A DNA stretch of 64,000 bases, taken from positions 1 through 64,000 of the forward strand of contig CDMY01000624.1 in the NCBI GenBank assembly GCA_001179505.1, written 5' to 3'. The notes under the pieces are model-generated. The model saw only the letters and a program-made list of their open reading frames with translations. It was not told the origin of the DNA and did not search any database. Each line of letters opens with the position of its first letter. The stretch's first letter is position 1. This DNA is from Vitrella brassicaformis CCMP3155 (taxonomy: Eukaryota > Protista > Chromerida). The translations under genes and the position numbers were made by a program. Of the stretch, positions 1,793 to 62,789 are shown one piece after another.

Positions 1793-4700
1793 CTAGTTTA
1801 TGGCATTCGGGGGAGGTGACGCCGCTGCGGCCGATGCCGATGGCGTGGTAGTTGGCGCCGTCCCCGCTGCTGCTGCAGTCGGTGCATTCACTTGCGCCTG
1901 TTGCTGGTGGAGCCCATGCAGGAAGGGGTGGTGCCCATGCAGCTGCGCAATGGGCGGCCGTGCAGCGAACATAAAGAACGGCATCGAAAGGGCCAGTTGC
2001 GCCTGTTGCGGGTGAAATGGCATGGGTGTCATGAGTTGCGGAGCAGCCGACGACGGGAGCAGCATGGTTGGTGCGTTGGATGCCGTGGGTGCCATGAATG
2101 GCGGGGCAGCCGACGACGGGAGCAGCATGGTTGGTGCGTTGGGTGTGGTGGACCACCACTGCTGCGAAGGGGTGGGTTGGTGCGTTGGGGCGTCACCCGG
2201 GCCCTCTGAGTAGGGAAACGGCACAGGGCAAACAACGTCCTGTATGCAGCATTTGTGTATAGAGGGCTTGTGCACCCACCTGCTGCAGCATTAGAGAGGT
2301 CTGGGCTGGTAGCTTCTTGAGGGGGTGACTGGATGAATCCAAAGACGAAGCAGAGATAAGCAGAGGTGCCAAGGTGCAAGCTTTTGGATCAGTACCTGCC
2401 CCGGGATGGGGGGGCCCTGGCTTTGGTCATGGATCCCCACAAACCGCTCAGACGCTGCCAACCTATCGGTCAGTTCCGCCCGCGCCACACCCCATTGTGG
2501 CTGTGCGTTTTGCTGGAATCTCCTCATCATCGGCTCGGGCTTGACATGGGGCATCTGCATAGAGTCGTCAGCTGGCCTCTGTGTCCGGCGCCATCTCCTC
2601 ATCGTCGTCTCCACGTCGCTGAGTCGTGCACCAAGTGCACAGCGGAGGACGTCAATGCGGACACTCACGAAGGTCCCTTCCAACTCGACCCATGCCACAC
2701 TCGCACGACCGACAGCAACCAGAATGGCATCTGCACACACGCACAGACACAGAGAAATAATGCATGCACACCGACCGCCAGTTCCCTTCTCGTTACCTGT
2801 GTGGCCTCCACCGCTGTACACTTTGCTGTAGGTCGAGTGAGGGTTGCTGCAGGTCGAGCGAGCACCCCTCACTGCCTCTACGGTCTTCATCATGGTCTCC
2901 CTCATGCTGCTCGCCATGCCCGTCCAGAAGTCCTCAGTCAGGTGAGGGAGCTCCACACGGCTGAACTGGTTGACCAGCAGATTCTTCAAAGAGTCGAAGG
3001 GAAGCTTCTTGACATCGCACAGCTCCCACTGCAGCATTGCCGCTTGATGGTCCTCCCCGAAGCCCACGACCAGCCGATCGTCCGCCGGGCCGTACATCTT
3101 CACTTCCTCTTCTTTGCAGAAGAAAATCGGGTGAGCGTAGCCCAGGAGGCGAGCGGGCTCCCCCTCGCACCCCGACTGCTGCAAGACGCAGATGCGAAAG
3201 GCGCAAGGCACCCTCTCAGGGCCACGGCGCTTCGTCCTCTCGATGGGCGTGCTTCTCTCCTCCCGTCGCGTGAAGTGCATGTCCGACTCCCCCAGGTGCA
3301 AGATGACTGTCCGATCCGACCGCTTCACTGGCTTCACTGGTAGGTCGAAGCCGAGCTGAGCGCCATGTGGGACAACGCGTCCCGTGAGAAGCTCGTACCG
3401 CACTAGGATCCATGTGCCGGTGACGTCGGGCAGTGGCCGCTCAACCTCCAGCTGATGGCCGTTCTGCCCTCCCTGCAGAAAATAGCAGGCCGGGCTGGCG
3501 ACGGGGGTGGCAGCGAAAGGGACGTTGAGGACGTAGAGGATCTTGTCGCTGACATTCTGCAGCTGCTCTCCGACGATCTTCAGCAGCTGCGGCCGGTTCG
3601 CAACGGTGCGCAGCACCTGCATCACATACGTACACGCGGAACACCGCAATCAATCGATGGTGCCATTGTGATGTGGGCGAGTGCTTGCCTGGAAGTTCTG
3701 CTGGAGGAAGGCAAGCGTCGTGGTCTCGCCGTGCTCATATCCACTGGGTGATTGTGTTGCTGGTACAGCTGCACTGGACGCGCTGGCGCTCACTCGAGGC
3801 CTCTTTTGCGGCGGCTCGTTAGAGCTGCCCGCACCTTCGGCGGCATGCACCACCTGGCAAATGACAGACACACCACACAATACACACACACACACACACA
3901 CATATGCGTGACACCGGCACCGATCTCTGCAGTTTCCTTTCGTGCACGCAGCCACGCACCGGTTGTTCCTCCTCCTCTTCCTCGCCCCCTGGTCCCTCCT
4001 GCCCCTCCTCATGCTGCAGCTGGTGTGCTGCAGCAGCTGGCTGGTCAGCCGCCATGCCCACGTCCTCCGGGTCGTAGAGGAGATACTTGATATTCTGAAC
4101 AAAGACGCGGATGCATACGCACTCGTCATCACCACACGCGTATCTTCGAACCCTCTCTTGTACAAGCACTCACCTCCACACCGATGGAAAGCTTCTCGCC
4201 GGTTTGCAGGTATCGCACTTTGACCTGAACGAGTAAAGAGCGTCTCTCTCTCTCCGTCTGTCTGTGTGAGTGCCGGTGCATGTATATATGCGGTATACCA
4301 GCCATCTATCGCGCTCGGGCTCTTCGAGCACCTCCACGTCGTAGAAGCCATCCTCCTCACCATCCTCCTCGCCATCCTCCTCGAAAAGAGACGTGACTGA
4401 CATTCTCATACCTGGTCCGCACCATCAGCACACACTCACTCACTCACTCACACATTCTCTCACACACACGGAGAGAGAGATTCTTCTGATATCTTGCCTT
4501 TTTTGACTGTCTCGACTCGAGGGGGCTCGCGACGGAGCGCGTGCTCCTGCGGTGAGACAAAGGCTGCTCTTTGGTACACATCTGCAGACAGGCGGCAGAG
4601 GCCAGCAAGAGTCCCACACTCACCCACACCAAGATGCAACGCTGCGTGATGCCTCTCACCGCTCGCGAACAGTGTGGCGGCAACCTGGATGCGCTGGATT

Positions 4701-21300: not shown

Positions 21301-23860
21301 TCAGCCTGACACAAACGGATCATAGAACTGCACCACGCCCCACCTGCACCCACAAAGACAGGGACAATGCCTGAGTGCTCAGGGGGGGGGTTAAGGCTGG
21401 GCCTTGCTCACTCACTCACCTGCCATTGACCATCCACTTTGGATCGCTCTCGGCTGCTTTCTGTGTCTTGTCCGCCGCCATGCCGCAGCTGCACACACGC
21501 GCAAGTTCATGCGCACATGTGTACCCACATACACACATGTGTTTTCATTCGCCAATCCGCTCACCCCAATTCGGCCTTGAGTGCTCGCAGGGCCAGCATC
21601 CGTGTGGGCGAATACGTCACCACATCAGAGAAGGGCGTTGATAGCGGCCAGTAGCGATCACCTGCAGCACACACACACACACACACATACACACACAGGG
21701 CTGCCTGCATCCTTTGTCCCCCGCACAGACAGCGAAGACCAAACACACCGAGTAGTCGCCTGTAGTTGCAGTCGCCCTTGACGATCATCATGCTGGACTC
21801 GTTTGCCAGTGTCTGCCGGAGGCCCGGTGGCATCTCCCAGAAGGCGTAAGGCTGGTTCCAAAAGCCATCACACTGCAGGACGGGACACACACAGAGGGAG
21901 GGAGGGAGGGAGGGAGCAAAGACGGCGGCGTCTTTGCTCTGTTTTGCGGATGGTGTGTGTGTCTCACGTTGAATTGCCACTTGTTCTCGTCGACGTAGGA
22001 CCGCAATCTCTGGGCGATCTTGACGCATGACGGATACTGCACACGCAACAGGACATCTGTGTGGGGGGGGGGGGNNNNNNNNNNNNNNNNNNNNNNNNNN
22101 NNNNNNNNNNNNNNNNNNNNNNNNNNNNNNNNNNNNNNNNNNNNNNNNNNNNNNNNNNNNNNNNNNNNNNNNNNNNNNNNNNNNNNNNNNNNNNNNNNNN
22201 NNNNNNNNNNNNNNNNNNNNNNNNNNNNNNNNNNNNNNNNNNNNNNNNNNNNNNNNNNNNNNNNNNNNNNNNNNNNNNNNNNNNNNNNNNNNNNNNNNNN
22301 NNNNNNNNNNNNNNNNNNNNNNNNNNNNNNNNNNNNNNNNNNNNNNNNNNNNNNNNNNNNNNNNNNNNNNNNNNGGGGGGGGGGGGCAGATAGGTGTCAC
22401 CTTGTCGGCATCGGTGAGCGAGGCCATGTAGTCGATGGTCTGCTCCGCATCCTTGGGCATCGCATCTGCCCACCAAACCCCATAACCAGCCACCATAGCA
22501 TAGACACACACATAAGTCCGTCCAGTGACTGACAAGATGGCAAGAATGTATGTGCACTGCAAATGTAAGTACCCGAAACGAACACAGGCTGCTCCTTGAG
22601 CTGGAACACCACTTTCTTGGCGATGCCGCACCGCACCAGGCAGTCGGCCAAACACATGTCAGACACCAGCTCAAACCCGGCGTTGTCGGCCACCATGTCC
22701 ACACGAGCCAGCGGCAGCTGCACGTACGCACACATCCCAACACACAACACACGCCATTGCCCTCCCTCCCTCCCTCTCCCCCTCTCTGTCAGTGTCACCT
22801 GTCCTCTGATGCTGTCCCACATCACGGCAAAATCGTCCGCGAGCAGCATCGCGGAGCCCTCGCTCATGGCCTGGTCCACATGTCGGGCGTGGTTCTGCTG
22901 GCTGTCGGCTGATGACGGCCAGAGGGAGAGATCCATCTTGTTGCCCCACAGGGACGCAAACACGTGCAGGTGGAGACCCATAGACTGATCGGGGTCGCTC
23001 TGACATATGCACACACACACATACACCACACACATATGTATGGAGGGGGTCGTGCGTGGGTCATCTCTCGCTGCCTTGCGTCGCCTTGCACCTCGTCGAG
23101 TGACTTTTGTGCCAGCGCTTCGATGGACGGCATGCTGTCGGCGAGCCCGGCCTTTTTCTGCTGCTCAAATGGGTCGATCTGAGTCTGGTACCAATCCACC
23201 GCCTCCAACACACGACTGCAGGCATCGCATCAAGCAAAGAAGGAGGGAGGCATCAACACAGCACATGACGCCCATTTGGCCAGCCACTCACCGATAGAAG
23301 TAGAACTCGGTGATGAGCCACGGTGCGCTCAGCCAGGTGGCCCCCTTATCCACCCACTCGCCCAGCAGCTCCCGCCAGACATCTTTGTCGGGCCCGCCGT
23401 CGCTCTCCCTGATGTGCCGCAGCTTGCTCACACCAGGCTGCTGCAGCTCGGCCTTGAGCTCGTCGAGCTGCCGAATGCATGACGGTGGGAGTGAGGGGTT
23501 TTCCTCGTAGATGCGCGAGAGGATCTCGTCGCGCACACGGCGGGACATCGTGTCATGCGCCTGAATCGTTGCACGCACACACAGAGAGAGAGAGAGATGA
23601 ATGAGCCACTCATCTGAGTGAGTGTGTCTGGCTGATTGACCAACTCAATTACTCACCCACGTGCCAGGCACGTCAGAGAAGATGCGTGGCGGCAGGTCCG
23701 CCCTGGGCATCATGCCGGGCCTCACCGACGCCCGTGTTGCCATGGCTGTTGGTGAAGCAGGCGCATGAAAACCTGACAGCCGCCGCCGAATGAGCCGTGT
23801 TGACGAGGCGAGGGAGGGGAGGATGCAGCTGATGCACAGGGGCACCAGTGGGATGAACAT
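21301..23860 (-). CDS. ARMT1: Damage-control phosphatase ARMT1/DUF89 family, with a possible bipartite targeting leader
   Basis: APWLITEFYFYR, DPFEQQK, LWGNKMDLSL, DNAGFELVSD, KEQPVFVSD, KGDCNYRRLLGD, LRALKAE and WMVNGRWGVVQF form the DUF89 motif series. One gap lies inside the gene. Confidence 0.92.
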
Positions 23861-25996
23861 CCAACACCAGCAGCAAGGAGGAGCAGCAGCTGTGGTCGAT
23901 CTCTGTTGCGGTGTTGCGCGCTTAGCTTCGAGACTCTCATGCACCGAACAGACCGACCGATCGTTTGGCGAGGATGCCACTCTGCAGATCTTGTTGAGTG
24001 GTACAGATGAGTGAGCGTCTTCCCCCGCCCCCCGTCAGACATCCACACACACACACACACACGCACACGCACACGCAAACACGCATCGATCATGCAGATG
24101 GATGAATCCATTGCAATGCAGGAAGGGAAGGCACAGAAGGCACATGATCAGATCATCTCACGTGCAGGCAGCTTGTACCAACAGCTGCGTGACATGCACG
24201 AGTTGTGACGTATGTGTTTGTTGTCTTGTCTTGTCTTACTTGCCCCAGCCACCTATCTATCCGTCCATCGAATGAATCGAGACGACCGACACGCCCATGC
24301 ATCCCACGGACGAAATACCCACTCACCCACAGGCCCATCGAAGGAAGAGACAGACGACGCAACGCAACGTGTTAAAACACTTCTGTTGCTTGCCAAGCAT
24401 GTGCGTGTGTCAACTCATTTGTGTCCGTGTGTCCGAGAAAGTGAGTGCACTCGCTGTTTGTGCCGCTGATCAGGTGAGGTGACGACACAGTGGCTGGCAG
24501 TGTAGTGTAGTGATAGTGAGTGTGTGGTCTGTAGGAAAGATCGAAGGGAAAAACTCCTGGTCAGAAGTACGCACGCAGAGCCATTTAGCCGGCCGGCACC
24601 TAGGGGAAAATGAGATTCGATTCAGCCACGCACCACTTACACACACACACAGATAGATACACACACACACAGATACACACACACACACGCACACAGATAC
24701 ACACACGCAGAGAGACATTCACGAAACCCAAATAAACGAACGCCAAACGACCGAAACGACCGAAACGAACGCAAAGGAACCAAACACGGGCACGCCCTCT
24801 CGTCGCTGCTTTGCACTCTTGTGGTGCAGCCAACAATCATCTCGTCCAGACAGGTGGACAAAGGGCGGGAGGGCCGTATGACACACGGCAGTCGTCATCA
24901 TCATCCCGCGACACGAACGAAAGTCGCGTGGCCATTGATTGATTGCCACATTCAGTGCACGTGTGCGTGTGGGAAAAAGACAAACACGCGTCCTTCGTGC
25001 GTGTGTGTGGGGAAATACGAATAGGCATGGATGGCATGTAGGTATGGAAAAAGACAAGACAACAGGGGTACACACGCAGGCAGGCACACAATGAATGAGG
25101 AAAAAGGCAGAAGGCACACGCATCTTTCTCTTTGACAGACAGGCAGGGAATGTCGTTGATGCCTGCAGTGTAATACATGTGATGGGGGTGTGCTGGTGAG
25201 GTGAGTGGTGTGAGTTGCATATCGAACGACCGTCACCGCACTTACGAGCCATCCATCCATCCATCCATCCTAGGTAAGTAATAGCATACATATCACGTAT
25301 GCCAAAATCGCCATCCATCCATCCAGCCGCGACACATCCAGCCACTCGTCCATCCATCCATCCCTCCGATCCATCCTTCATGGAAAAATTGGTTGATTCA
25401 AAACTCTTCCTCAACTGCCCCTATCGGTATATATATCAATCAGGGTATATGTATATGTGTGTCTGTGTGTGTGTGTGTGAGCCCATCGATCCATATCGAC
25501 GACAGACGAACGACGCGACACCTCTCTCTCTCTCTGTCTCTATATCTCTCTCGCGGCCACCCATCCATCCATCCATCCATCCGCTGCCGCAGACCCAGAC
25601 ACACACTGACACATCCACACGCCATGCCATTGTCAGCTGCACACACACATGCACACATCCACACACGTACACACGTTCATGGACACGGTAGGTCCCAAAA
25701 ACAGCACAGCACTTGCACCGCACTGCGTCTCTCCTGTCTGTCTGTGTGTGTGCCGGCAGCTCGTTAGAAAATGCCCCAACTGAGGAAGCAAGTGGGAATG
25801 GCCGCAAAACAAGAAGGTGAATCAGAGAGAGAACAGGGACAGTCGCACACACAAGCCACACGGACACAGACATGGCATGCAATCCATCAAAAGGCGTAGT
25901 GAAGAGAACAAAAAACCACACCACCGGCCACACGCACACACAGCTGCAGCTATCTCTCGCCCTCTCTGGTGTATTGTATAGGTGTCAGTGTGTCAG

Positions 25997-27857
25997 TCAG
26001 TAGGCGAAGAGGCTGCGTGAGACGAAGTGGGCGACTTGTTTGACGGCAGTGGGTGTGTTGACGTAGAAGTGGCCGCCGTCGAACTCCTGGAAGTCAAACT
26101 CGCCCGTCGTGATCTCGGACCAACCCACCATCTCCTGCTGAGTCGTCACCCTGATCATGACACGCACACACACACACACAGAGAGGGAGAGAGAGAGAGA
26201 CACATGTGTGGTGGTGGTGGTGGTGGATGGGGAGGGAGGGAGGGAGGGAGGGAGGGGGAGAGAGCTCACTTGTCGTCTTTGCCTCTGCAGGCAGTGATGG
26301 CTACGGGCAGCAGGTGGTCGCTGTGGGCCCACTCGTAGTGCTCGTGCAGCAGAATGTCCCCACGCAACGCGGGCAACTGATCGACCGACAGACGGATGAC
26401 ACACACATTGTCACAAACACGTTTCCTTCGGTGGCTGGCTGGCTGGATGGATGGTCTCATACCATGGTCTCGAGCAGCTCCGGGTGCTCCTGCGCCTCGT
26501 CCGGGATGAGGTCGTGGGCGGAGTGTTGGAGAAGGTTGAGGAAGGCCTCGCTGCTCAGCTCCTCAGCGCTTTTGCCCTCCTGGTCAACCTGGCTGCCGAA
26601 GCCAGCCTGGCTCGACGCCCCTCGCGGACACGCATTCCCTGCACACACACACACACACGCACCAGGTGTCTGGTGCTGGTGTGGGTGGGGGAGGGGGGGG
26701 CACTCTCTCTCTCTCTCTCTCTCTCTCGTGTGACGTACGCACCTGAGACGAATATGTGTGTTGGGAGTTTCATGCCCTGTTTGTCGAGTTTGATGGCCAC
26801 CTCGTAGAGCACGATGGCGCCCACACTGTCGCCGAAGAAGGCGTAGGGCACGGGGGAAGTCACCACCCCCTGCAGGGCCGACACGATCTGGCTCGACATG
26901 GTGTCCACACAGGTGATGGCCTCCTCGTTGACCCTACCACACACACCACACACACCAACACACACACACACAAATGCACGAAGATCCATCCATCTGTGTG
27001 TGTGGGTGTGTTCTGCGGACCGTTCGAGTCGCCCCGGAGTGAGAATGGCGATCATTTCGACGTCCTCCCTGAGCTCCTTGCCCAGCTGGTAGAAGTGCGC
27101 CGGGCCGCCCCCGGCCGGCGGGAAGCACACGAGCCGCTTGGCGGGGTTGGGCTTGGCGGGCCCGAAGCGCACCAGCCAGGGGGAGTCCTCGATGGTGTTG
27201 CTGGTGCGGGGGGAGTCGGACGTGTCGGACGCGTTGTCGTCTGTGTGGTCGTTGCCCTGGCCGTCCTCTCGGTTGCCGATCGACATCCGGCTGCACTCAC
27301 ACACACAGAGGGAGAGAGAGACGGCAGCCATCCACTCAAACCGCGTGTCTCTTTGGGGNNNNNNNNNNNNNNNNNNNNNNNNNNNNNNNNNNNNNNNNNN
27401 NNNNNNNNNNNNNNNNNNNNNNNNNNNNNNNNNNNNNNNNNNNNNNNNNNNNNNNNNNNNNNNNNNNNNNNNNNNNNNNNNNNNNNNNNNNNNNNNNNNN
27501 NNNNNNNNNNNNNNNNNNNNNNNNNNNNNNNNNNNNNNNNNNNNNNNNNNNNNNNNNNNNNNNNNNNNNNNNNNNNNNNNNNNNNNNNNNNNNNNNNNNN
27601 NNNNNNNNNNNNNNNNNNNNNNNNNNNNNNNNNNNNNNNNNNNNNNNNNNNNNNNNNNGGGGGGGAAGGTACCTGATGGATCGTGTGATGGACGTGATGC
27701 TCTCGAGTTCGGCGCGGTCGAGTCCGAATCTGTCGTTGAACTTCTCGACCAGCTGGGCGATGGTGGGGGCGTCGAAAAAGTCGCGCAGCGGGATGCTGAA
27801 TGAAACACAACACAACAGCAGGTAGGCCGCGTATCCCGTGTGATTGTTGTTACTGCC

Positions 27858-27890
<33 letters not shown>

Positions 27891-30800
27891 TGTGTGGTGT
27901 TGGTGGGGGGGGAGGCTGTGCGCACCGGAAGCCGAATTCCTTTTCGATTCTCGAGATGACCTGCAGAGCCAGCAGTGAGTGGCCGCCCATCTGGAAGAAG
28001 TTGCACGTGATGCCGCAACTGACCACCCAACACACACACACACGGAGAGAGGGAGAGAGATGAAGAGATGCAGCAGCAGCCAGCCAGCTGTGTGTGTGTG
28101 AGCGTTAGGATCGTTCCCTCACCGCTTGAGCCCCATGACGGTCGAGAATATGTCGCAAAGAGCCGACTCGCGCGCATTGCGGGGCGCCATGATCTCCTCC
28201 TCCTCGATCTCAACCTATGCGCAGGCCCCCACACCCATCCATCCATCCATCCACATGCAGATGGTCGAGCTGTTTTGATGGTCTGACCTCAGGTGCGGGC
28301 AGTTTCTTGCGGTCGATCTTGCCGTTGGGCAGCAGGGGCAGCTCCTTCAGCTGCACAAACACTGGCGGCACCTAAGAGAGGGCAGGGGAGGGCGGGGGCG
28401 GCCACACCAAAGACAGCAGAAACGAAGAGAGAGAGAGAGAGTCCGCCCGTTCCTTGGGGATAGCTTCCGCCCGCAAGAAATGAGGGATGTGACAGTCGTG
28501 AACCGTGCTGTGACGCTTTCTCTCTCTCTCCCCCTCTCTGTGCTCATGTCCCCCCCCCTCTCTCTCTCTCTCTCGCTCTCTGTGTGTGTGTGTGTGTGAG
28601 CAGATGGTTGAGTGTGTGTGTGTGTGAGTACCATGTAGTCGGGCAGCCAGGATGAGCAGTGCTCCTTGAGCATCTGGACGTCCACCTTGACCTCAGGCTG
28701 GTTCTTGTAGCACTCCCAGCCCTTGAGCGACTCGCGCGGCAGAAAGGCGTTGACCACACGGTGGTCCACAGTGGACCTGACACACAGCACACACGCCCTC
28801 TTGTCCCCATCTCTCTCTCTGTCTCTCCCCTTCTCTCTCTGTCTGTCGTTGGCTGCCGCACTTGTAGATGATGCAGTCAAAGGTGCTGGCGTCCTTGGAC
28901 GCGCTCCACCCCACGAAGCACCGGTACCCCGCACAGGCCTCCAGCACGTGTGTGCGGAGCTCCTCCGGGTGGACGGCGGTGCCGTCGTCGCCCTCGAAGA
29001 GCAGCCCGTCCTTCAGAGGACAGTCGCCCGCACACATATCGGGGTTGGACGACACCCATTGGATGAGGTTGGTCTGAACGATAAGGCAGAGGAGTGCGAC
29101 AATGGTGCGTCTCCACACGGATTGTGGTGAGGGTTAGGTGGGTTACCTCGTTGATGAGCCGGCCGTTGGGAATGTCGGTGACACGGATGACGTCCACCCC
29201 CTCGGCTGCCTTTCCGTCGATGAAGCCACACACGGCCTGCACACACACACCACACACACACACACGGAGGGAGGGAGGGAGGGACAGACAGACACATAGG
29301 ACACTTTTCAGACCGATGTGTGTGCCCGTGACACGCACCTGCAGCGGGGTGCTGCTGGTGTCTTGCTTGGTTTGTGTCAGGTGTGTGTAGGGCGTGTTGA
29401 CGGTGTTCTGCGGGAGGGTGAAGGGGCCGGGCTGGTCGCCAATGTGAAAGATGACGTCATATCTAGCACACACACACACACACACACGCACAGCCACACA
29501 GAGACACACCGGTAACGAGACGAGAAGACCACAACACCGGTGTGGTGCACCTTCCCGTCTGACCACCACACGCACCTGTATCGGGTGAACTCCGAGTGGT
29601 AGAACCCCCGCTTCAGCCGCACCTCTACGTGGGCCACGCCGGGCAACTCGCCGTTCTGACACACACACACACACACCACACGACACACATACACACACAC
29701 ACAACCAAACACGCACACGCACTCACAGATCTGCACACAAGTCCCCCTCTCTGTATGTGTGTGTGTTGTGTGCAGGGGGTCAGACGCACCTGCCACATGG
29801 TGGTGAAGAGGAAGGGGTCATAGAGGCTCTCCTTCTCCGTGTCGATGGCCTTGTCGATCAGGGCCTTCACCTCACGCACCGGTGTGTGAGGGTTGGCCTG
29901 ATCCATGGGAAGGGCGATGCGTTCCAGCACGTGTGTTGTGTGCGGCGTTGGCTGCCTGTTTGTGTGGTTGATTGTCCACCCACCTGGTGCATTCTGACGG
30001 CGTGGTGGAACTCGCGGAGGTGCAGGGACGAGCGGACATCCCCCAGCACCACCTTGCCGCCTATAACCGCACACACACACACAGACATTTACACACAGAC
30101 CTCTCCCTGTCTCTCTGTGGCAGCTGTGTTTCATGCATGCCTTTGCGCACAAAGCAGACAGACCTTTCTTGACGACGTTGCAGGCGCGGAGCACCACGTC
30201 CAGCAGATAGCGCACACCTGCCCACACAGCCACACACAGCCAGGCATGGTGGACGGATGTCTGTGCACACGCTAAAGGTATGGTCAGCTGTTTCAGGCTT
30301 ACTTGGGAAGTACATTGAGACGCCGTTGACGAGCACCAGGTCGTAGCTGTCGTGCGCCAGGTTGGTGAAGTCGGCCGCCTCGCGGAGAGAGGTCTCTAGA
30401 GAGATGTGCCGGTACTGCGGCAACGTCGAGCGCACCTGACATCCATTCAGAAACACACATCCATCCATCCATCCATCCATGTGTGTGTGTGTGTGTGTGT
30501 GCACAGGCGCACACCTCTTGCAGGTAGCCGAGTGCCTCGTTGGAGATGTCGCAGCCGTGGTAGTGCTGCACACTCGGGGCAATGCGGAACAGCAGCATGC
30601 CTGTCGAACCACACACACACACAGCAGAGACAGAGGGGAGAGAGAGAGAGAGAGAGTGGGCAAAGGTGTGTGTGGCCTCCCCGGCATGAAATCAGCCCAC
30701 GGAAAAGTTGTGCAGTAAGTATGCACCCCCCTCCATCCCTCCCTCCCTGCCCCTCCCCTCCCTCCCATTGCCTTGAGAAGACAATACACGGACGGGCTCA

Positions 30801-33800
30801 GTCGCTCCTTCGGGCGTCATCAGCTCAGGTCAGATGTCAGCTGCTGGCCGCCACCATTGCCGCACGCACACACACCGACATGCACCCCGGCTGGGCTGGT
30901 TGCCGAATGGCGGATCGATTCGCGGGCTGGCCGACACTGGTCAGTCAACGTTACGCCCCCACGCACAGGCAGGCACACGGATTCACGTGACGCATCGCAT
31001 CCATCGCATGTACTGTAACGAGACGCCCGCACACACACATGACATGGCATGGACAGCACGGTAAAACGTAACGGCCCAGACGTGGGTAGTGCGACGTTGC
31101 CCAGCACAGCAGCAAAGGATAGGGCATGTGTGGGTGCTCTCTCTCTCTCTCTGTCTGTCTTTGTATGCACGCTTGTGTGTGTGTTGGTGGTGATGGTGGT
31201 GTTGGGGTGAGTGTACCGTTGCCGCATCCCATCTCGAGCACGCGTCTCGGCTGCAGATCCATGACAATCTTGACGGTCTCCTCGACCCTGCGACCACACA
31301 CACACACACACACACTCATGTGTCTGCCGGTCTGTCCACGGGCACACACGCATGCAGACAGACCACTCCTTGACGACGTCGACTTGGTGCGGCATCAGGG
31401 TGTAGGAGTCGTCATAGCCACTGAAGTTGAGAGTGGGGTCGTCAACCTGTCCATCCATCCAGCCAGCCAGCCATCCATCCATCGGATACACACTCGTGTG
31501 TGGGCATGGGGCATGGTGAAGTGGTGTGAGCGGCCCACCACGCCGGTCTTCCTGCTGTAAGCGGCATCGTAGACGTCAGCCCAATCCTGCACCTTCGAGT
31601 GCGACCGGTCCTCCGCCTCCTTGGCCTCACTCTCACGCGCCTGTTGGTTGGCACAGATGCGATGAGCACGTGAGTGACACGCACTCTGCGTGTTGGTTAA
31701 TTGGTGGGGGGGTACCTCGTTCTCGAGTTCCCACGGCTTGGTGACGATGTAGGAGACGAGCTGCTTGCTGCCGTCTGGGGTCTCGTGGCCCACCACACAC
31801 ACGTCGGCCACTGAGGGGTGGTGCGACAGGACGTCCTCGATCTCGCCGCACTCGATGCGGAAACTGCACACACACAAAGAGAGAGAGAGAGAGAGAGGGA
31901 GGGAGAGAGAGGAGAGAGAGACAAGTGCATGGAAGATGCGTGTGTGGGTGTGGGAGTACCCTCTGATTTTGACTTGGTTGTCGATGCGCCCCAGGCACTC
32001 GAGCTGCTTGTCGGGCAGCAAACGCGCCAGGTCCCCTGTCTGCACGTCACACACACACACACACACACGCACACAGAGAGAGAGAGGCGGGCATCCATCC
32101 ATCCATCCAACCATCGCATGTGTGTATGGTGGTGTGTGTGTGTGTGCGGCACCGACCTTGTACATGAGCGTGTTGGGGACGAACGGGTTGGCAACGAACT
32201 TCTCGGCCTGCAACGCACACACACATACAGAGAGTGAGAGGTGGTTCTCGAGCCCAGCCCACATACAGAGTGAACTCTTCACCGGCCGGCCTCAAGACCT
32301 ACCGTGATCTCAGGTCGATTCAAGTACCCCCGGGCCAGCGACACGCCAGCGATGTGCAGCTCGCCGACCTCGCCGTCCTTGACGAGCTCGCCCTTTTCGT
32401 TGAGAATGTAGTGGACGTAGTTGGGCAGCGCGTACCCGATGGGGACCTTCTCCATTCCAGCGGTGATCTCGGCCGTCGTGCACCATATCTGCCACCCCAC
32501 CACACACACAGGCGCGTTGCGTCGTGTGGCCGTCGCTCACTGACTGACTCACCGTGGCTTCGGTGGGCCCGTAGAGGTTCATGACGCGGTCGCCCAGCTC
32601 GCAGAGGCGGTTGGCCAGGTGCTTGTTGAGGGGCTCGCCACCGCTGCCGATAGTCAGCCCGCGGCAGCCCTCCCAATCCGAATCGATCAACGCCTACACA
32701 CACCCAACCAAACCAACCACACAATCACTGGCACACACACACCAGTGCTGGTGTGTGGTGACGGCCGGCCGGCCGACCTTCCAGAGTGACGGTGTGGCCT
32801 GCATAAAGGCCGGTTTGGCAGTGCGGAAGACGTCCATGAGGAGGGAGGTGTCGCGCATCTCGTCGCGTGAGGCGATGCGCAGGTGTGCGCCGAAAATGAG
32901 TGGCAGGAACCAGTCCAGGTTGGAGATGTCGAAGCACATGGTCGTCACGCCCAGCAGCGTGCCCTCCTCGGGAAGTTGCAGCGCCTGACGAACGAACGCA
33001 CCCCACCCACACAGGGCAGGCAGGAAATGTCCGGTGGTGTGGTGTGTCTGTGGATGGTATGGGGTGGGTGGTATGCTCACCTCCTGGAATCCATAGAGGA
33101 AGTTGACCAAACTCTCATGCAGAATCTGCACGCCCTTGGGTTTGCCCGTGCTGCCGCTCGTATACAGCACATACACCAGGTCGCCGGCCTCGCTGTCGCG
33201 CCACCCACCAGGCACAGGCACACCCTGTGCGGACGTGGTGGCCACATCGGGAAGCGGCTGGTCGACGTAGACGATCTTGTGCGCCCCTCCCTCCTTGAGC
33301 TCGGGTGAGACATCGCCCTCGGCCACCAGCACCGACGCGTTGGCATCCTCCAGGATGAAGGCAATGCGCTCGGGCGGGAAGTCGGGGTCGAGCGGAACGA
33401 ACCCGCCGCCCGCCTTGAGCACGCCCAGCAGCGAGACGATCAGGCGGGCCGACCGCCGCACCGACACCCCCACCAGTGTCTCGCGCGTGATGCCCTCTGC
33501 ACGCAGCACCGCCGCCAACGCATCGGCCTACACACAAGACACACAAGACAAACACCCGCAGCACACACGCCCCGGCGCCCCGGATTGAGAGGTCTCGTGT
33601 TGCTGGCAGTGGTGGGTGGGGTGGGGAGCACGCACCTGTTGGTTGAGTTGGGCGTAGGTGAGAGTGGTGCCGAAGGCGTCGGTGACAGCAGGGCGGTTGG
33701 GGTGCTTCTTGACGCGCTCCTCGAAGAGCTTGTGGGTGGTGCTGCGTGGGAAGGCGAGCTCCGAGGCGGGGATCTGCTCGTGTGCCTGGCGGCTGAGGTG

Positions 33801-33812
33801 GGAGCTCACCAT
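25997..33812 (-). CDS. Stand-alone NRPS: adenylation domain interrupted by an N-methyltransferase, then carrier (T) domain and thioesterase; about 30 exons
   Basis: A1 LTYAQLN, A2 LKAGGGFVPLDP, A3 YTSGSTGKPKG, A4 FDIS, A5 NLYGPTE, A6 GELHIAGVSLARGYLNRP, A7 YKTGDL, A8 GRIDNQVKIRGFRIECGEIE. MT: VLEMGCGNG, YHGCDIS, LVNGVSMYFP, LGDVRS. A9 LPDYMVP, A10 PNGKIDR. T: FFQMGGHSL. TE: FPPAGG, GDSVG, DGGHFY. Confidence 0.95.
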
Positions 33813-34120
33813 TGCGAAGCAAGTCGAGGGCAAAAGAGCTGCGTCGTTCTGCCGAGATCTGCACTCAGGCTAAGCTCGCTTAGCTCGCAGGAGGTGCCGA
33901 GCGCAGACATCTCTCAGAGATCTCCCAGCAAACACCAGCCGGGTGAGGCCATCTCCACAGCACACACACTCCCTCAGGTCAGTCACGAAAACACACCAAA
34001 GGAAAGGCCAGACTGACTGACTGACCGGTGCTGTTGTGTTGTGTGTGTAGATTTGTTGCCTCTTCGGAGGTCTCTGACAAACACATTTCGCACTCGCCAT
34101 TCAGCCGTGTTTGATCAGTG

Positions 34121-59400: not shown

Positions 59401-62400
59401 AGCCTCATATCGGCGTCGTGGTCGTAGACCTTGGCCAGCCCCGCCGTCTGCAGAAAGTGCTGCTTCGACTTGCTGGACCGGCCCATCGGTGACCGAAAGG
59501 GATCGCTCTGGTGACTCAAACACCGAGTGGCCCTGACAGGCGTCTCCCCACCGCCACCCACACCCACACCCACAGACGCCTCGGTGGCGCACCGCATCGG
59601 CGGCGCCGACACTGCTCGCGCAGACGCTGTGGCTGTGGCTTTGTTGTCGGTGTCTGCCAGGCTGGCCGTGTCGGTGGACATGGCCAGCAGGGGCTCGCCG
59701 GCAGCAGGAACGGCGTCGGAGCGTGAGAGTCTGGCGGGGGAGCGCGCCTCGAGGCTGACGGGCGATGGCGAGCCGTTGGGCGTCTTGGAGAGGGCATCGA
59801 TCTGGCTGTGGGTGGCGGAACGCAGCTCCTGGATTGTCTGGCGTGTAGCAAAAGGGCAGCGAATGAATGACCACTGAGTGTGTGTGGGTGTGGTGTGTGC
59901 GCGTGTGGTGTGGTGTGTGACCTGGTCCTGTCTCTGCAGTAGTGCCTGTCGGCAGACTTCGCACTGCAGCAGGTCCAGGGGCAGCTGCCGGTGGAACGCC
60001 GCCACGCCCTCCTCCACACCATTCTCACGCGCCATCTGCTCCGCCAAAATGGCCGCATTCGCCTTGGTCTAAAGATACACCAAAACCAACGCACACGTGA
60101 CCAATACGGCTCGCTCTGCTGATGAGTATCTCTCACATCGTCTCGCTGGCAGTGTCGAATGGCCTCCGCGAAGGCTTTCTGCGTCATGCGTGTGCCGGCG
60201 ATGGGTGCCGGCCCCGCCCCGAACCGCTTGACCATCTCGCCCCAGAAGAACTGGTCGCCGAAAAACGGCACGACGATGGTGGGCCGGCCGGCGCGGAGCC
60301 CCGCTGCCGTCGTGCCGGCGCCGCCGTGATGGCAGACGGCCTCACACCGGGGAAACAGCCAATCGTGCGGACAGTTGCCTGCAGGAGACAAAGAGGCAGG
60401 CGTGGAGATGGGGTGGTGGAGAGATGGACTGACCGATGAAGAAGATTTGGTCGGGGTTGACGTCTTCGAGTTTGGAGAGGTCCTCGCTCCAGCCCTTGTT
60501 GATCAACGCACGCACTCCAGTGGAGCTGTCAGACAACCAGCCACCCAGAGAGACACACGAGGAGAGAGGGAGAGAGAGAGAGATGCAGCGAGCCAGCCAG
60601 GCACCCGGCCGTGTGTGGTAGGCTGCTTACATGACGGCTTTGATGATTCCGCTCATGATTCGGTCGAAGCCGTCGACCACCACAGAGCCAAAGCCGATGT
60701 AGAAGGGCGGCGGACCCTTAGACATGAAGGCGTCCAAGTCGCTGGGCGGCCGATACGACGTCACACTGAGAAATGCGCACAGACCCACAAAACACACACA
60801 ACACACACATACAGATGGATGGTTCAAGCTAGCATGGTGGCGGGGCGGGGGGGCACACCAACCAGTCAAGGAAGAAGAATCCGGTGATGTCGATCTGCGG
60901 CCCCCAGTCTTTCGGCTTTGGGATGAGGGACGGCGACCAGCAGTAGGCATGCGGCACCTTCAAGTGGTCCAACAAACTAGGAGCTGACAGATCAACAGAA
61001 GCACCGCCACTGATGGAATGCCTGGGCTCTTTCTTCTCTCCTGATTGATTGATTGATTGCTTGACTGACTGACCTTCTTCGGTCCTGTGGATGGTGTCCA
61101 GGCCGAGTGTCCTCTTGCGGAAGTTGTTGATGAGGTCCCGCATGCCCAGCCACGTCAGCTCGTTGACCAAAGTGTAAGACAGCCAATTCTCAAACTCATT
61201 CGTCGCCCTGCAAAGCACAGACACACACATATCCACACATCCGTTTGTTTGCATGTGTGTGTCTGGCTACGGCCCCCACCTACCCACCTGTCATGGTGTG
61301 TGAGGGGGTGGGGGAAGCTCTCTGTGGGCGACCACGGCATAGTGAAGTAGATGTGGCAAGGGATCTTGAGCCGCTCCGCCACGTGGATGTGCGCCCACGA
61401 CACAGGGTTCGCTATGATGGCCTCGGCCACAAACTCCTCACCCGTGTCCAAATCACTCGCCCTGCACAGCACACACACAGCGGCATGGGATGGACATCTA
61501 GCGTCTTGTCGTCTGTCTCTTGTGTGTGTCACTCATTCGGTCATTGGTACGTGCTGGCGGGCCAGGCCGACTGGATGATCTCATCGAGGATCTGGCGCTT
61601 CTTGGGGATCTCACGGGGGTCGCGCGGCAGCAGACCTGACCCACCGCACCAGCCCCACCCCCAACACACGACTGTGCGGCACTTGCCTGTGTGTGAGTGT
61701 ATGTGTGTGAGTTGATATGGGCCCTGACAGGCACGTACCAGGGTTGCGCACCATGTAGGCGAGCAGCTCCTTGGGGTCACCGCCCAGCGGATAAAACGCC
61801 AGACCCTCACCCTTGACGAAATCCTACCACACACCGCACCCATGCGCTCATGCGTCACTCCCTCCCTGCCTGCCTCCCGTGTCACCCTGAAATTAGAGTG
61901 TGTGGCGAGCCTGCAGGTGTGTCCGATCTCATTCAGCTTCTTGGCCAGCGGGATGAATGGCTGCACGTCGCCCCGCGACCCCACCACCAGGATCAGTATC
62001 TTGAGCCGCGGGATGAACTCCAGATTGTCCGGCTGGATGAACAGCTGGCCCACAAGCATGTGCGCCTTGCTCCGGACGTCCTCCCGACACAGAAACTCCG
62101 TCAGGTCCTTCTCGATGCACCGCACACTCTTGTCGATCGACACGTCGTTCTGGTCCTCCAGACCACACACAGTCTCCTCCAGGCGGTGCACCAGCTCGGG
62201 GAATTCGGGAGAGGGGAGGTTGGGGAAGCGAAGCTCGATGCGCCGGAGGGAGACGATGAAGTAGGAGGAGCTCATGAGCAGCTCTCGCGTGGCGTCTTGG
62301 TGTTCGATCTGGAAGAGGAGCAGGAGCTGCGCGCCTCGCCGGCTCCACCCCTTGATGCGGATCTGGTAGTGGGGCGTGGTGTCCTTGATGCTGTCGCGGT

Positions 62401-62789
62401 CGTGCCGGCTGGCCTCCTTCTTGGCGAGCTCCTCACCTGCCGCACGAAGGTCAATGCGGCTGTCGTGGGTGAGGGTCCTGTGCAGCACCATCGATACACC
62501 ACACACACAACAGACAGACAGACAGGCAGACAGATAGGCAACAGGTGAGGTGCCGATGCATAACTTGCTTGTCCATCTCTCGGAGCCCGTGTGTGTGTGT
62601 GTGTGACCTGAGGAGTTTGATGGCTTCCTCGTCCTTGGCTTCATCGTCGCTTGGCAGAGATGCCGGCGAGTCCTCCTTGACGGCACGGCCGGGCGACCGC
62701 AGCTGCCCCTCGGCCACGGCAGCAGGCTTGCTGCCCCTCGCTGATCTGGGCCGCTTCGACGAGTCGGATGATGCGCGAGACCGAAACAT
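56497..62789 (-). CDS. GT1-family sterol 3-beta-glucosyltransferase-like protein (UGT80/ATG26-like) with N- and C-terminal extensions
   Basis: [49 protein letters not shown]...[35 protein letters not shown]...[12 protein letters not shown]...[12 protein letters not shown]. Confidence 0.92.

Follow-up and report, generated by a model that had tools for sequence, protein, structure and literature searches.

Several known enzymes consist of one adenylation (A) domain and one carrier (T) domain followed by a releasing domain, with no condensation (C) domain: the MysE-type A-T-TE enzymes of the shinorine pathway (TE, thioesterase), indigoidine synthetase (A-Ox-T-TE), the fungal A-T-TE quinone synthetases and the glycine betaine reductase ATRR. 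They act on Ser, Gln, aryl keto acids or glycine betaine, they differ in release chemistry from the enzyme described here and, to our knowledge, none of them carries an embedded N-methyltransferase (N-MT). Such C-less single-module enzymes, resembling nonribosomal peptide synthetases (NRPSs), have repeatedly been found in unexpected parts of primary metabolism, as in the ligation step of shinorine formation and in the reduction of glycine betaine. A methyltransferase (M) domain of type I lying between motifs A8 and A9 of the A domain (A8-M-A9) defines the family 1 interrupted A domains, in which the M domain has a size of 390 ± 21 amino acids (aa) (Lundy et al. 2020, PMC8341866). The gene described here has both features. 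It was found in a 64,000-nucleotide stretch of the genome of the alga Vitrella brassicaformis CCMP3155 (contig CDMY01000624.1, positions 1 to 64,000; hereafter the window), on the minus strand from 33812 to 25997, and it encodes, on a single mRNA, a protein with the domain order A(N-MT between A8 and A9)-T-TE, in which all core motifs are intact.

The function proposed for this protein, for which the sequence gives slightly better than an even chance, is the synthesis of N-methylglycine (sarcosine), dependent on ATP and S-adenosylmethionine (SAM), and its hydrolytic release. The gene represents a clean, expressed and full-length eukaryotic case in which an embedded N-MT and a type-II-like TE occur together with a predicted substrate as simple as glycine. 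If the product is free sarcosine or a betaine, the enzyme would define a new way of forming solutes that are common in algae, and would suggest a function for unstudied bacterial proteins of the same layout; should the product merely feed another synthase as a building block, the find would be an ordinary one.

Domain architecture, gene model and transcripts

Base-by-base reading of the minus strand gave a gene of 30 exons and 29 introns, the latter all with GT..AG borders; after splicing, the coding sequence comprises 4092 nt, corresponding to 1363 aa and TGA, in one open reading frame (ORF) that starts with ATG at 33812-33810 and stops with TGA at 25999-25997. The encoded domains are the following:

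31716..33812, minus strand: adenylation domain A1-A8, exons 1-8, aa 1-479 (Pfam AMP-binding and AMP-binding_C), with A3 LYTSGSTGKPKGV at position 180, A4 FDIS at position 226, A5 NLYGPTE at position 316 and A8 GRIDNQVKIRGFRIECGEIE at position 420, A8 ending at aa 439
28690..31640, minus strand: N-methyltransferase inserted between A8 and A9, encoded by exons 9-21 and covering about aa 480-915, with the motifs VLEMGCGNG (motif I, position 557), GCDIS, NGVSMYFP and GGKVVLGDVR
28288..28689, minus strand: A9 LPDYMVP (position 930, split by intron 21) and A10 NGKIDRKKL (position 950, Lys952), end of exon 21 and exon 22
27673..28214, minus strand: carrier (T) domain, exons 23-25, with GGHSL at 1004 (Ser1007)
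25997..27290, minus strand: linker and thioesterase, exons 26-30, aa 1065-1363, with CFPPAGGG at 1120, GDSVG at 1189 (Ser1191), GKDD (Asp1311 or Asp1312) and GGHFY at 1338 (His1340)

Pfam searches on the exon frames returned colinear AMP-binding pieces (profile 1-384), AMP-binding_C, PP-binding and Thioesterase, and motifs A1 to A10 follow each other in order, as in the NRPS adenylation domains of the ANL superfamily (PF00501/PF13193). BLAST comparison of the model with a collected set of bacterial A(M)-T modules produced a single colinear alignment of about 1040 aa with 35-39% identity. Conservation was tested on the columns that are at least 95% conserved in 98 bacterial A(M)-T modules: the Vitrella protein keeps 48 of the 50 such columns in A1-8, 27 of 32 in the methyltransferase (MT), all eight in A9-10 and six of seven in T. 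Neither the transcript nor the rest of the window contains a condensation domain; tblastn with bacterial NRPSs containing C, epimerization (E) and TE domains found no match in the window outside 25900-33900, nor was any other NRPS or ketosynthase match found in the 64 kb. The ORF begins about 50 aa before A1, so that the order C-A-T(-TE) of a canonical module is absent, and the enzyme is termed NRPS-like because no condensation domain lies upstream of the A domain.

The exons of the model are, from high to low coordinates on the minus strand:

Exons 1-6: 33812-33636, 33527-33081, 32984-32778, 32693-32553, 32488-32303, 32207-32157
Exons 7-12: 32039-31960, 31863-31716, 31640-31539, 31446-31364, 31287-31217, 30600-30515
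Exons 13-18: 30435-30303, 30217-30164, 30060-29984, 29897-29790, 29655-29576, 29462-29339
Exons 19-24: 29236-29147, 29073-28862, 28776-28632, 28371-28288, 28214-28123, 28018-27926
Exons 25-30: 27795-27673, 27290-27021, 26933-26743, 26638-26463, 26376-26270, 26150-25997

The stretch occupied by the gene is contained in 8 public sequencing runs, three of which (X1, X2 and X7) contain some 40-45% of its words, equal to the exon share; these three were classed as RNA because their contigs lack introns, the run types being otherwise guesses of the tool. Over 25900-31899 each of the three gave one long contig, confined to the exons of the model and with CT..AC joints, that is GT..AG on the minus strand. 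The spliced joints seen are 28212>28286, which is present in three runs, 29073>29147, 29896>29983, 30059>30163, 30215>30301 and 31639>31715, and contigs of X3, a DNA run, continue through the introns. In the read mapping the microsatellites of the introns were skipped as repeats, and the contig pieces were trimmed by a few bases.

The lengths of transcript record X2-3 agree with the model to the nucleotide. Its pieces 27020-27290 (record 2577-2847) and 28635-28774 (record 3243-3382) are separated by 395 nt of record, compared with 392 nt in exons 22-25 (84+92+93+123) plus 3 nt that finish exon 21; between 29147 and 31537 the record has 904 nt versus 906 nt in ten exons, one joint being ambiguous by the 2 nt of a GT, and beyond 31862 it has 1315 nt versus 1290 nt of exons, which leaves a 5′ untranslated region (UTR) of 25 nt. 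The transcript contig stops 25 nt upstream of the ATG and contains no further ATG in those 25 nt, while the TGA falls within a contiguous RNA piece (25900-26149). The same accounting bears on a gap of undetermined bases that separates the carrier from the thioesterase:

27291..27672, minus strand: intron 25, with GT at 27672-27671 and AG at 27292-27291, and with the whole N gap 27359-27658 inside

This gap is wholly intronic and hides no exon, a conclusion drawn from the length accounting and not from a printed joint, since 27673|27290 is absent from the 15 joints printed. Because the gap lies inside intron 25, the T and TE domains are on one mRNA and in frame (...TRSIS|RMSIGN...); no X3 contig spans the gap, and the true length of intron 25 may differ from its coordinate span. 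Bacterial contamination is ruled out by the 29 GT..AG introns, which are removed in the RNA contigs: the gene is nuclear, intron-rich and expressed.

The original prediction, made on this DNA from its letters, had placed the gene at 25997-33812, bounds identical to the ends of the 30-exon model. It had described a C-less, single-module A(N-MT)-T-TE enzyme, with an intact carrier Ser in GGHSL and a C-terminal thioesterase having Ser and His, and this description is borne out by Pfam, by the motifs and by the exon model; likewise, its view of a spliced gene of an intron-rich genome coding for bacterial-type domains agrees with the introns, the transcript contigs and the homology. Two ways in which it could have been wrong were named, namely that the gene is not transcribed or spliced as one ORF, and that the gap at 27359-27658 conceals a break or extra domains: the former is contradicted by the spliced contigs of X1, X2 and X7 together with the single 1363-aa ORF, and a hidden exon or additional domain in the gap is ruled out by the transcript lengths. 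One detail had to be corrected, as 31641-31715 (VPPHQLTNTQ...), which a read-through would take as coding, is intron 8 in the model.

Contigs of X1, X2 and X7 extend 1842-1852 nt past 25900 and thus well beyond the TGA, which points to a 3′ UTR some 1.95 kb long (24048-25996, minus strand), ending near 24050, just before the next minus-strand ORF (ATG 24111); a codon-usage scan gave no coding signal in 24048-25996, and its small ORFs have no database record. The window is GC-rich, with values of about 0.52-0.63 around the gene, and contains five 300-N gaps. The minus-strand frames from stop to stop in 25997-33869 are pieces of adenylation, methyltransferase, carrier and thioesterase domains interspersed with CA, GA and TGGA microsatellites; one or another of these repeats lies in almost all introns (25000-34000), where they translate as HTHTH, RERER and WMDGWMDG. 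Intron 11 (30601-31216, 616 nt) is by far the longest, and low-depth RNA contigs were found within it (X1, 30873-31043, depth 5; X7, 30769-31124, depth 16, versus 375 for the mRNA), which could derive from partial intron retention or from a small separate transcript.

Adenylation domain and embedded methyltransferase

In the A domain, the Asp that binds the alpha-amino group (PheA 235) corresponds to Asp227 and the Lys of A10 (PheA 517) to Lys952. The specificity code reads DILQGGLIWK and is identical at nine of its ten positions to the glycine code DILQLGLIWK, the sole difference being L299G. The same alignment columns give DAWFLGNVVK, DFWNIGMVHK, DVWHISLVDK and DLFNNALTYK in other modules, which are known to specify Leu, Thr, Ser and Ala, respectively; the return of these familiar codes validates the columns used. 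The pattern DILQLG[LMV][IV]WK occurs in 13 of the 98 bacterial A(M)-T modules aligned, and among the DILQ-coded modules Gly at 299 is unique to the V. brassicaformis protein.

A tree of the A core (IQ-TREE, 447 columns, LG+G4) placed the protein in a clade of 15 rows, with SH-aLRT 99, to which every one of the 13 glycine-coded modules also belongs; identity in this comparison reached at most 48%. The best PDB matches of exons 3, 4 and 5 were AB3403, DhbF A1 and LgrA A2, each of which activates glycine. These best solved relatives of the pocket-forming exons, AB3403 (Acinetobacter baumannii, C-A(Gly)-T-TE, 4ZXH/4ZXI), DhbF (5U89) and LgrA (6MFY), share with the V. brassicaformis A domain the motifs FDIS..L, MQATP and GGE and a glycine-type code; unlike the algal protein, they have condensation domains and no methyltransferase, and the TE of AB3403 is of type I. 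Both its code and its place in the A-core clade thus assign the A domain to the glycine type. When the frame formed by exon 2, the following intron and exon 3 was used in a protein search, the best matches were merely 40-49% identical, and no fragment of 152-485 aa from the gene itself or from an orthologue was returned.

The MT aligns by BLAST with bacterial embedded N-MT domains at 26-41% identity over 260-400 aa (one weak match excluded), and a profile of these bacterial domains matches the interrupted A domain of TioS (5WMM) at 1e-110. The domain is therefore a homologous MT lying between a8 and a9, as in the family 1 interrupted A domains, although its size of about 430 aa slightly exceeds the range of that family. 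TioS A4aM4A4b and the other family 1 members have the same a8-a9 insertion of an N-MT, a homologous and colinear M domain, and SAM motifs that are kept in the Vitrella protein; however, they stand beside C domains in multimodular bacterial lines, whereas V. brassicaformis has one C-less eukaryotic module. The motif NSVxQYFP reads NGVSMYFP in the algal MT.

Thioesterase, product and alternatives

The carrier shows the sequence FFQMGGHSLLA expected of PF00550, and Pfam recognised PP-binding at 1.8e-6 on exon 24 alone. The C-terminal domain was identified as a PF00975 thioesterase (Pfam 6.2e-19), with both Ser1191 and His1340 present; inspection by eye suggests that the Asp of the triad is Asp1311 or Asp1312 in GKDD. 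When compared with the PDB, the stop-free frame of exons 26-27 matched type II thioesterases only, namely RifR (1.4e-14), human TE2 (3.7e-11), RedJ, TesA and SrfD, and in the ESM Atlas the TE frame fell among the YbtT/TEII clusters at 0.91. No protein of 100-318 aa shared enough 5-residue words with the frame to score, so the domain is divergent. By similarity, the TE belongs with the type II thioesterases (RifR/YbtT/human TE2), and it has in common with RifR (3FLA), human TE2/OLAH (4XJV), RedJ (3QMV) and YbtT the motifs CxPxAGG, GxSxG and GGHF(F/Y). While these relatives are free-standing and have the elbow GHSMG, the V. brassicaformis TE has the elbow GDSVG and lies in cis to the carrier, fused C-terminally in the same mRNA and ORF; it is thus TEII-like but is not classed as a classical TEII.

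In the proposed mechanism, the A domain would adenylate glycine, or else some alpha-amino acid of very small size, and load it on the phosphopantetheine arm of Ser1007; the embedded SAM-dependent MT would then N-methylate the tethered aminoacyl thioester, and the type-II-like TE, with its putative triad Ser1191/Asp/His1340, would hydrolyse the thioester to give free N-methylglycine. Several points weigh against this scheme. Type II thioesterases classically edit rather than release. To spend ATP on the formation of free sarcosine is metabolically odd, since soluble glycine N-methyltransferases exist; GSMT/SDMT and GNMT, which would be functional analogues but are an unrelated kind of enzyme, N-methylate free glycine with SAM and need neither ATP nor a carrier. 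Five of the 32 conserved MT positions are altered (W524Y, S631G, Q634M, L705S and N738S), owing to which the activity of the domain or the count of methyl groups may differ. In the A domain, L299G should enlarge the pocket, making Ala or another small substrate possible. Furthermore, a FastTree of whole modules puts the protein on a long branch (1.24), outside the glycine clade and beside module L078 (code DMAVGGGILK), a placement that is ascribed to the divergent MT and the long branch it causes, and that is a caveat nonetheless. Finally, no biochemical data were found for this or for any other stand-alone A(M)-T-TE enzyme.

The change in the pocket and the whole-module tree bear on the substrate. 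If Gly299 admitted alanine, beta-alanine, serine or some other small amino acid, a different N-methyl amino acid would be formed, and both the restriction of this residue to the Vitrella protein among DILQ-coded modules and the odd code of its nearest row in that tree speak for such a change. However, the nine glycine-like positions of the code include the bulky Leu239, Ile330 and Trp331, and the A-core tree, with its strong grouping of all glycine-coded modules, points in the same direction, so that a substrate other than glycine is considered decidedly unlikely.

With glycine as the predicted substrate, the altered MT positions raise the question of how far methylation would proceed. Glycine methylated two or three times would be released as N,N-dimethylglycine or as glycine betaine, a compatible solute; besides the five substitutions, this would be consistent with an amine that is left free because there is no C domain, with the good coverage of the gene in the RNA contigs of three runs, as expected of a housekeeping role, and with the same architecture in Oscillatoria sp. 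SIO1A7, where it stands outside any gene cluster. Against it, the argument is purely inferential, embedded N-MTs of this family are known chiefly as mono-methylating, contig depth does not rank expression, and no betaine-related gene lies nearby; repeated methylation is thus regarded as quite improbable, and a single methyl group, giving sarcosine, is retained in the preferred scheme.

The nature of the thioesterase allows two further fates of the tethered intermediate. The first is that the protein acts as a loading module in trans, passing the N-methyl-aminoacyl thioester to a separate C-domain protein or polyketide synthase (PKS), with the TE in cis merely editing, which is the role of the type II family in most characterised cases. 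Potential partners do exist in the organism, as a genome survey counted 18 type I PKS genes and one NRPS in Vitrella (PMC7073580). Such a partner is, however, missing from the 64-kb window, a docking or communication region is not evident at either terminus, the bacterial look-alike in locus L065 (see below) is likewise without NRPS or PKS neighbours, and a fused C-terminal TE usually marks a terminating module. Loading in trans is therefore an unlikely alternative, although one to be kept in mind.

The second fate is the joining of two tethered units by the TE through oligomerisation or cyclisation, giving for instance the diketopiperazine of sarcosine. Fungal C-less A-T-TE enzymes that dimerise their substrate are described in PMC9047271, which would provide a precedent; but those enzymes take aryl alpha-keto acids and have a TE of a different clade, the TE of the alga is closest to hydrolytic type II thioesterases, and nothing points to dimerisation, so that the chance of such a product appears very slight. 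The original prediction had compared the enzyme with indigoidine synthetase and the fungal A-T-TE proteins, with tailoring and dimerisation in mind. This analogy is not the closest one, given the Asp that binds the alpha-amino group, the glycine-type code and the hydrolytic type II TE; hydrolysis to free sarcosine is the outcome preferred here.

Related enzymes and neighbourhood

When 185,579 species genomes of bacteria and archaea were scanned with an N-MT profile, 80 loci were returned, whose ORFs were parsed by domain probes and Pfam. Most of them are of the type C-A(M)-T..., but C-less single modules occur. Locus L065 of Oscillatoria sp. SIO1A7 (NER33974.1, 1295 aa, L065:5528-9412) codes for a stand-alone A(M)-T-TE protein, which is also the best overall match to the Vitrella protein, with 38.7% identity over aa 27-1037 and 691 bits. 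The two share a glycine-type code (DILQLGMVWK in L065), the lack of NRPS neighbours and the position of M between A8 and A9. They differ in that the bacterial gene has no introns, retains Leu299 and ends in a type I TE (GWSMGG; best PDB match the TE of AB3403, 1.3e-41); as judged from these sequences, the thioesterase attached to the A(M)-T unit of the alga is of another kind.

An Anaerolinea metagenome-assembled genome (L080:3860-9511) codes for HpaB-A(M)-T-TE, in which a 4-hydroxyphenylacetate 3-hydroxylase (HpaB_N and HpaB) is fused N-terminally to an A(Gly)(M)-T-TE module whose code, DILQLGLIWK, is exactly that for glycine. Other C-less proteins end in a reductase (R, NAD_binding_4) and occur in cyanobacterial and uncultured genomes as stand-alone A(M)-T-R: four were parsed as such by Pfam (L046:5462-9919, L024:5528-9904, L062:1329-5687 and L068:5642-9973), and L054 and L055 likewise by probe parsing alone. 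The L046 protein has a glycine code and would yield N-methylaminoacetaldehyde. The ESM Atlas contains bacterial clusters of 51-88 members, about 1200-1400 aa long, with AMP-binding and PP-binding together with Thioesterase and/or a methyltransferase. A protein search with exon 2 gave giant multimodular NRPSs as the best 150 matches, in a ranking that sums all the A domains of a protein; in a profile search based on seven bacterial A(M)-T modules and four exons of the window, the best 120 were mainly cyanobacterial C-A(M)-T and two-module proteins, and the Vitrella protein itself was not among them.

L065 has the same layout as the algal protein, and bacterial ESM Atlas clusters of about 1200 aa combine AMP-binding, PP-binding and Thioesterase, some of them with a methyltransferase; the architecture is thus not special to this organism. 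The literature yielded neither a characterised stand-alone A(M)-T-TE nor an NRPS route to sarcosine or betaine; the concern that the architecture might be that of an already characterised enzyme did not materialise, the matches being uncharacterised bacterial proteins. In the algal genome survey, two Vitrella genes are listed as 'Other(A)', without description (PMC7073580). The gene is a eukaryotic variant of a bacterial enzyme kind that is present in databases and for which no study was found; it represents a solid find, moderately novel since unstudied bacterial proteins have the same layout. It can be viewed as an old bacterial-type gene to which, in an organism related to the apicomplexan parasites, 29 spliceosomal introns were later added. 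A wider proposal is that stand-alone A(Gly)(N-MT)-T-TE enzymes of the alga and of cyanobacteria such as Oscillatoria sp. SIO1A7 constitute an unrecognised way of making sarcosine, dimethylglycine or glycine betaine on a carrier at the expense of ATP. This would be an osmolyte or methyl-group pathway of primary metabolism built from NRPS parts, and not secondary metabolism, but the proposal is quite doubtful.

In L065, an ORF located 5 kb downstream of the A(Gly)(M)-T-TE gene (L065:14358-15227) gave a borderline match to the cyclodipeptide synthases (PF16715, 27.8 bits versus a cut-off of 27). The genes between NER33974.1 and this ORF are defence or toxin-antitoxin-like.

In Vitrella, the enzyme is a stand-alone C-less module without a local cluster. 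Among the frames adjoining the gene, the one downstream matches an ARMT1-like phosphatase and one at 38.2 kb gave a weak match to kinases, with no NRPS or PKS, and on account of these neighbours a local biosynthetic cluster is ruled out. The 'uncharacterised small-molecule pathway' of the original prediction would accordingly have no partner genes nearby. The remaining observations in the window are the following:

22400-23164, minus strand: exon frame matching the ARMT1-like damage-control phosphatase (PF01937, 1.2e-18), adjoined by the N gap 22075-22374
59519-62788, minus strand: UDP-glycosyltransferase-like frames, judged by eye

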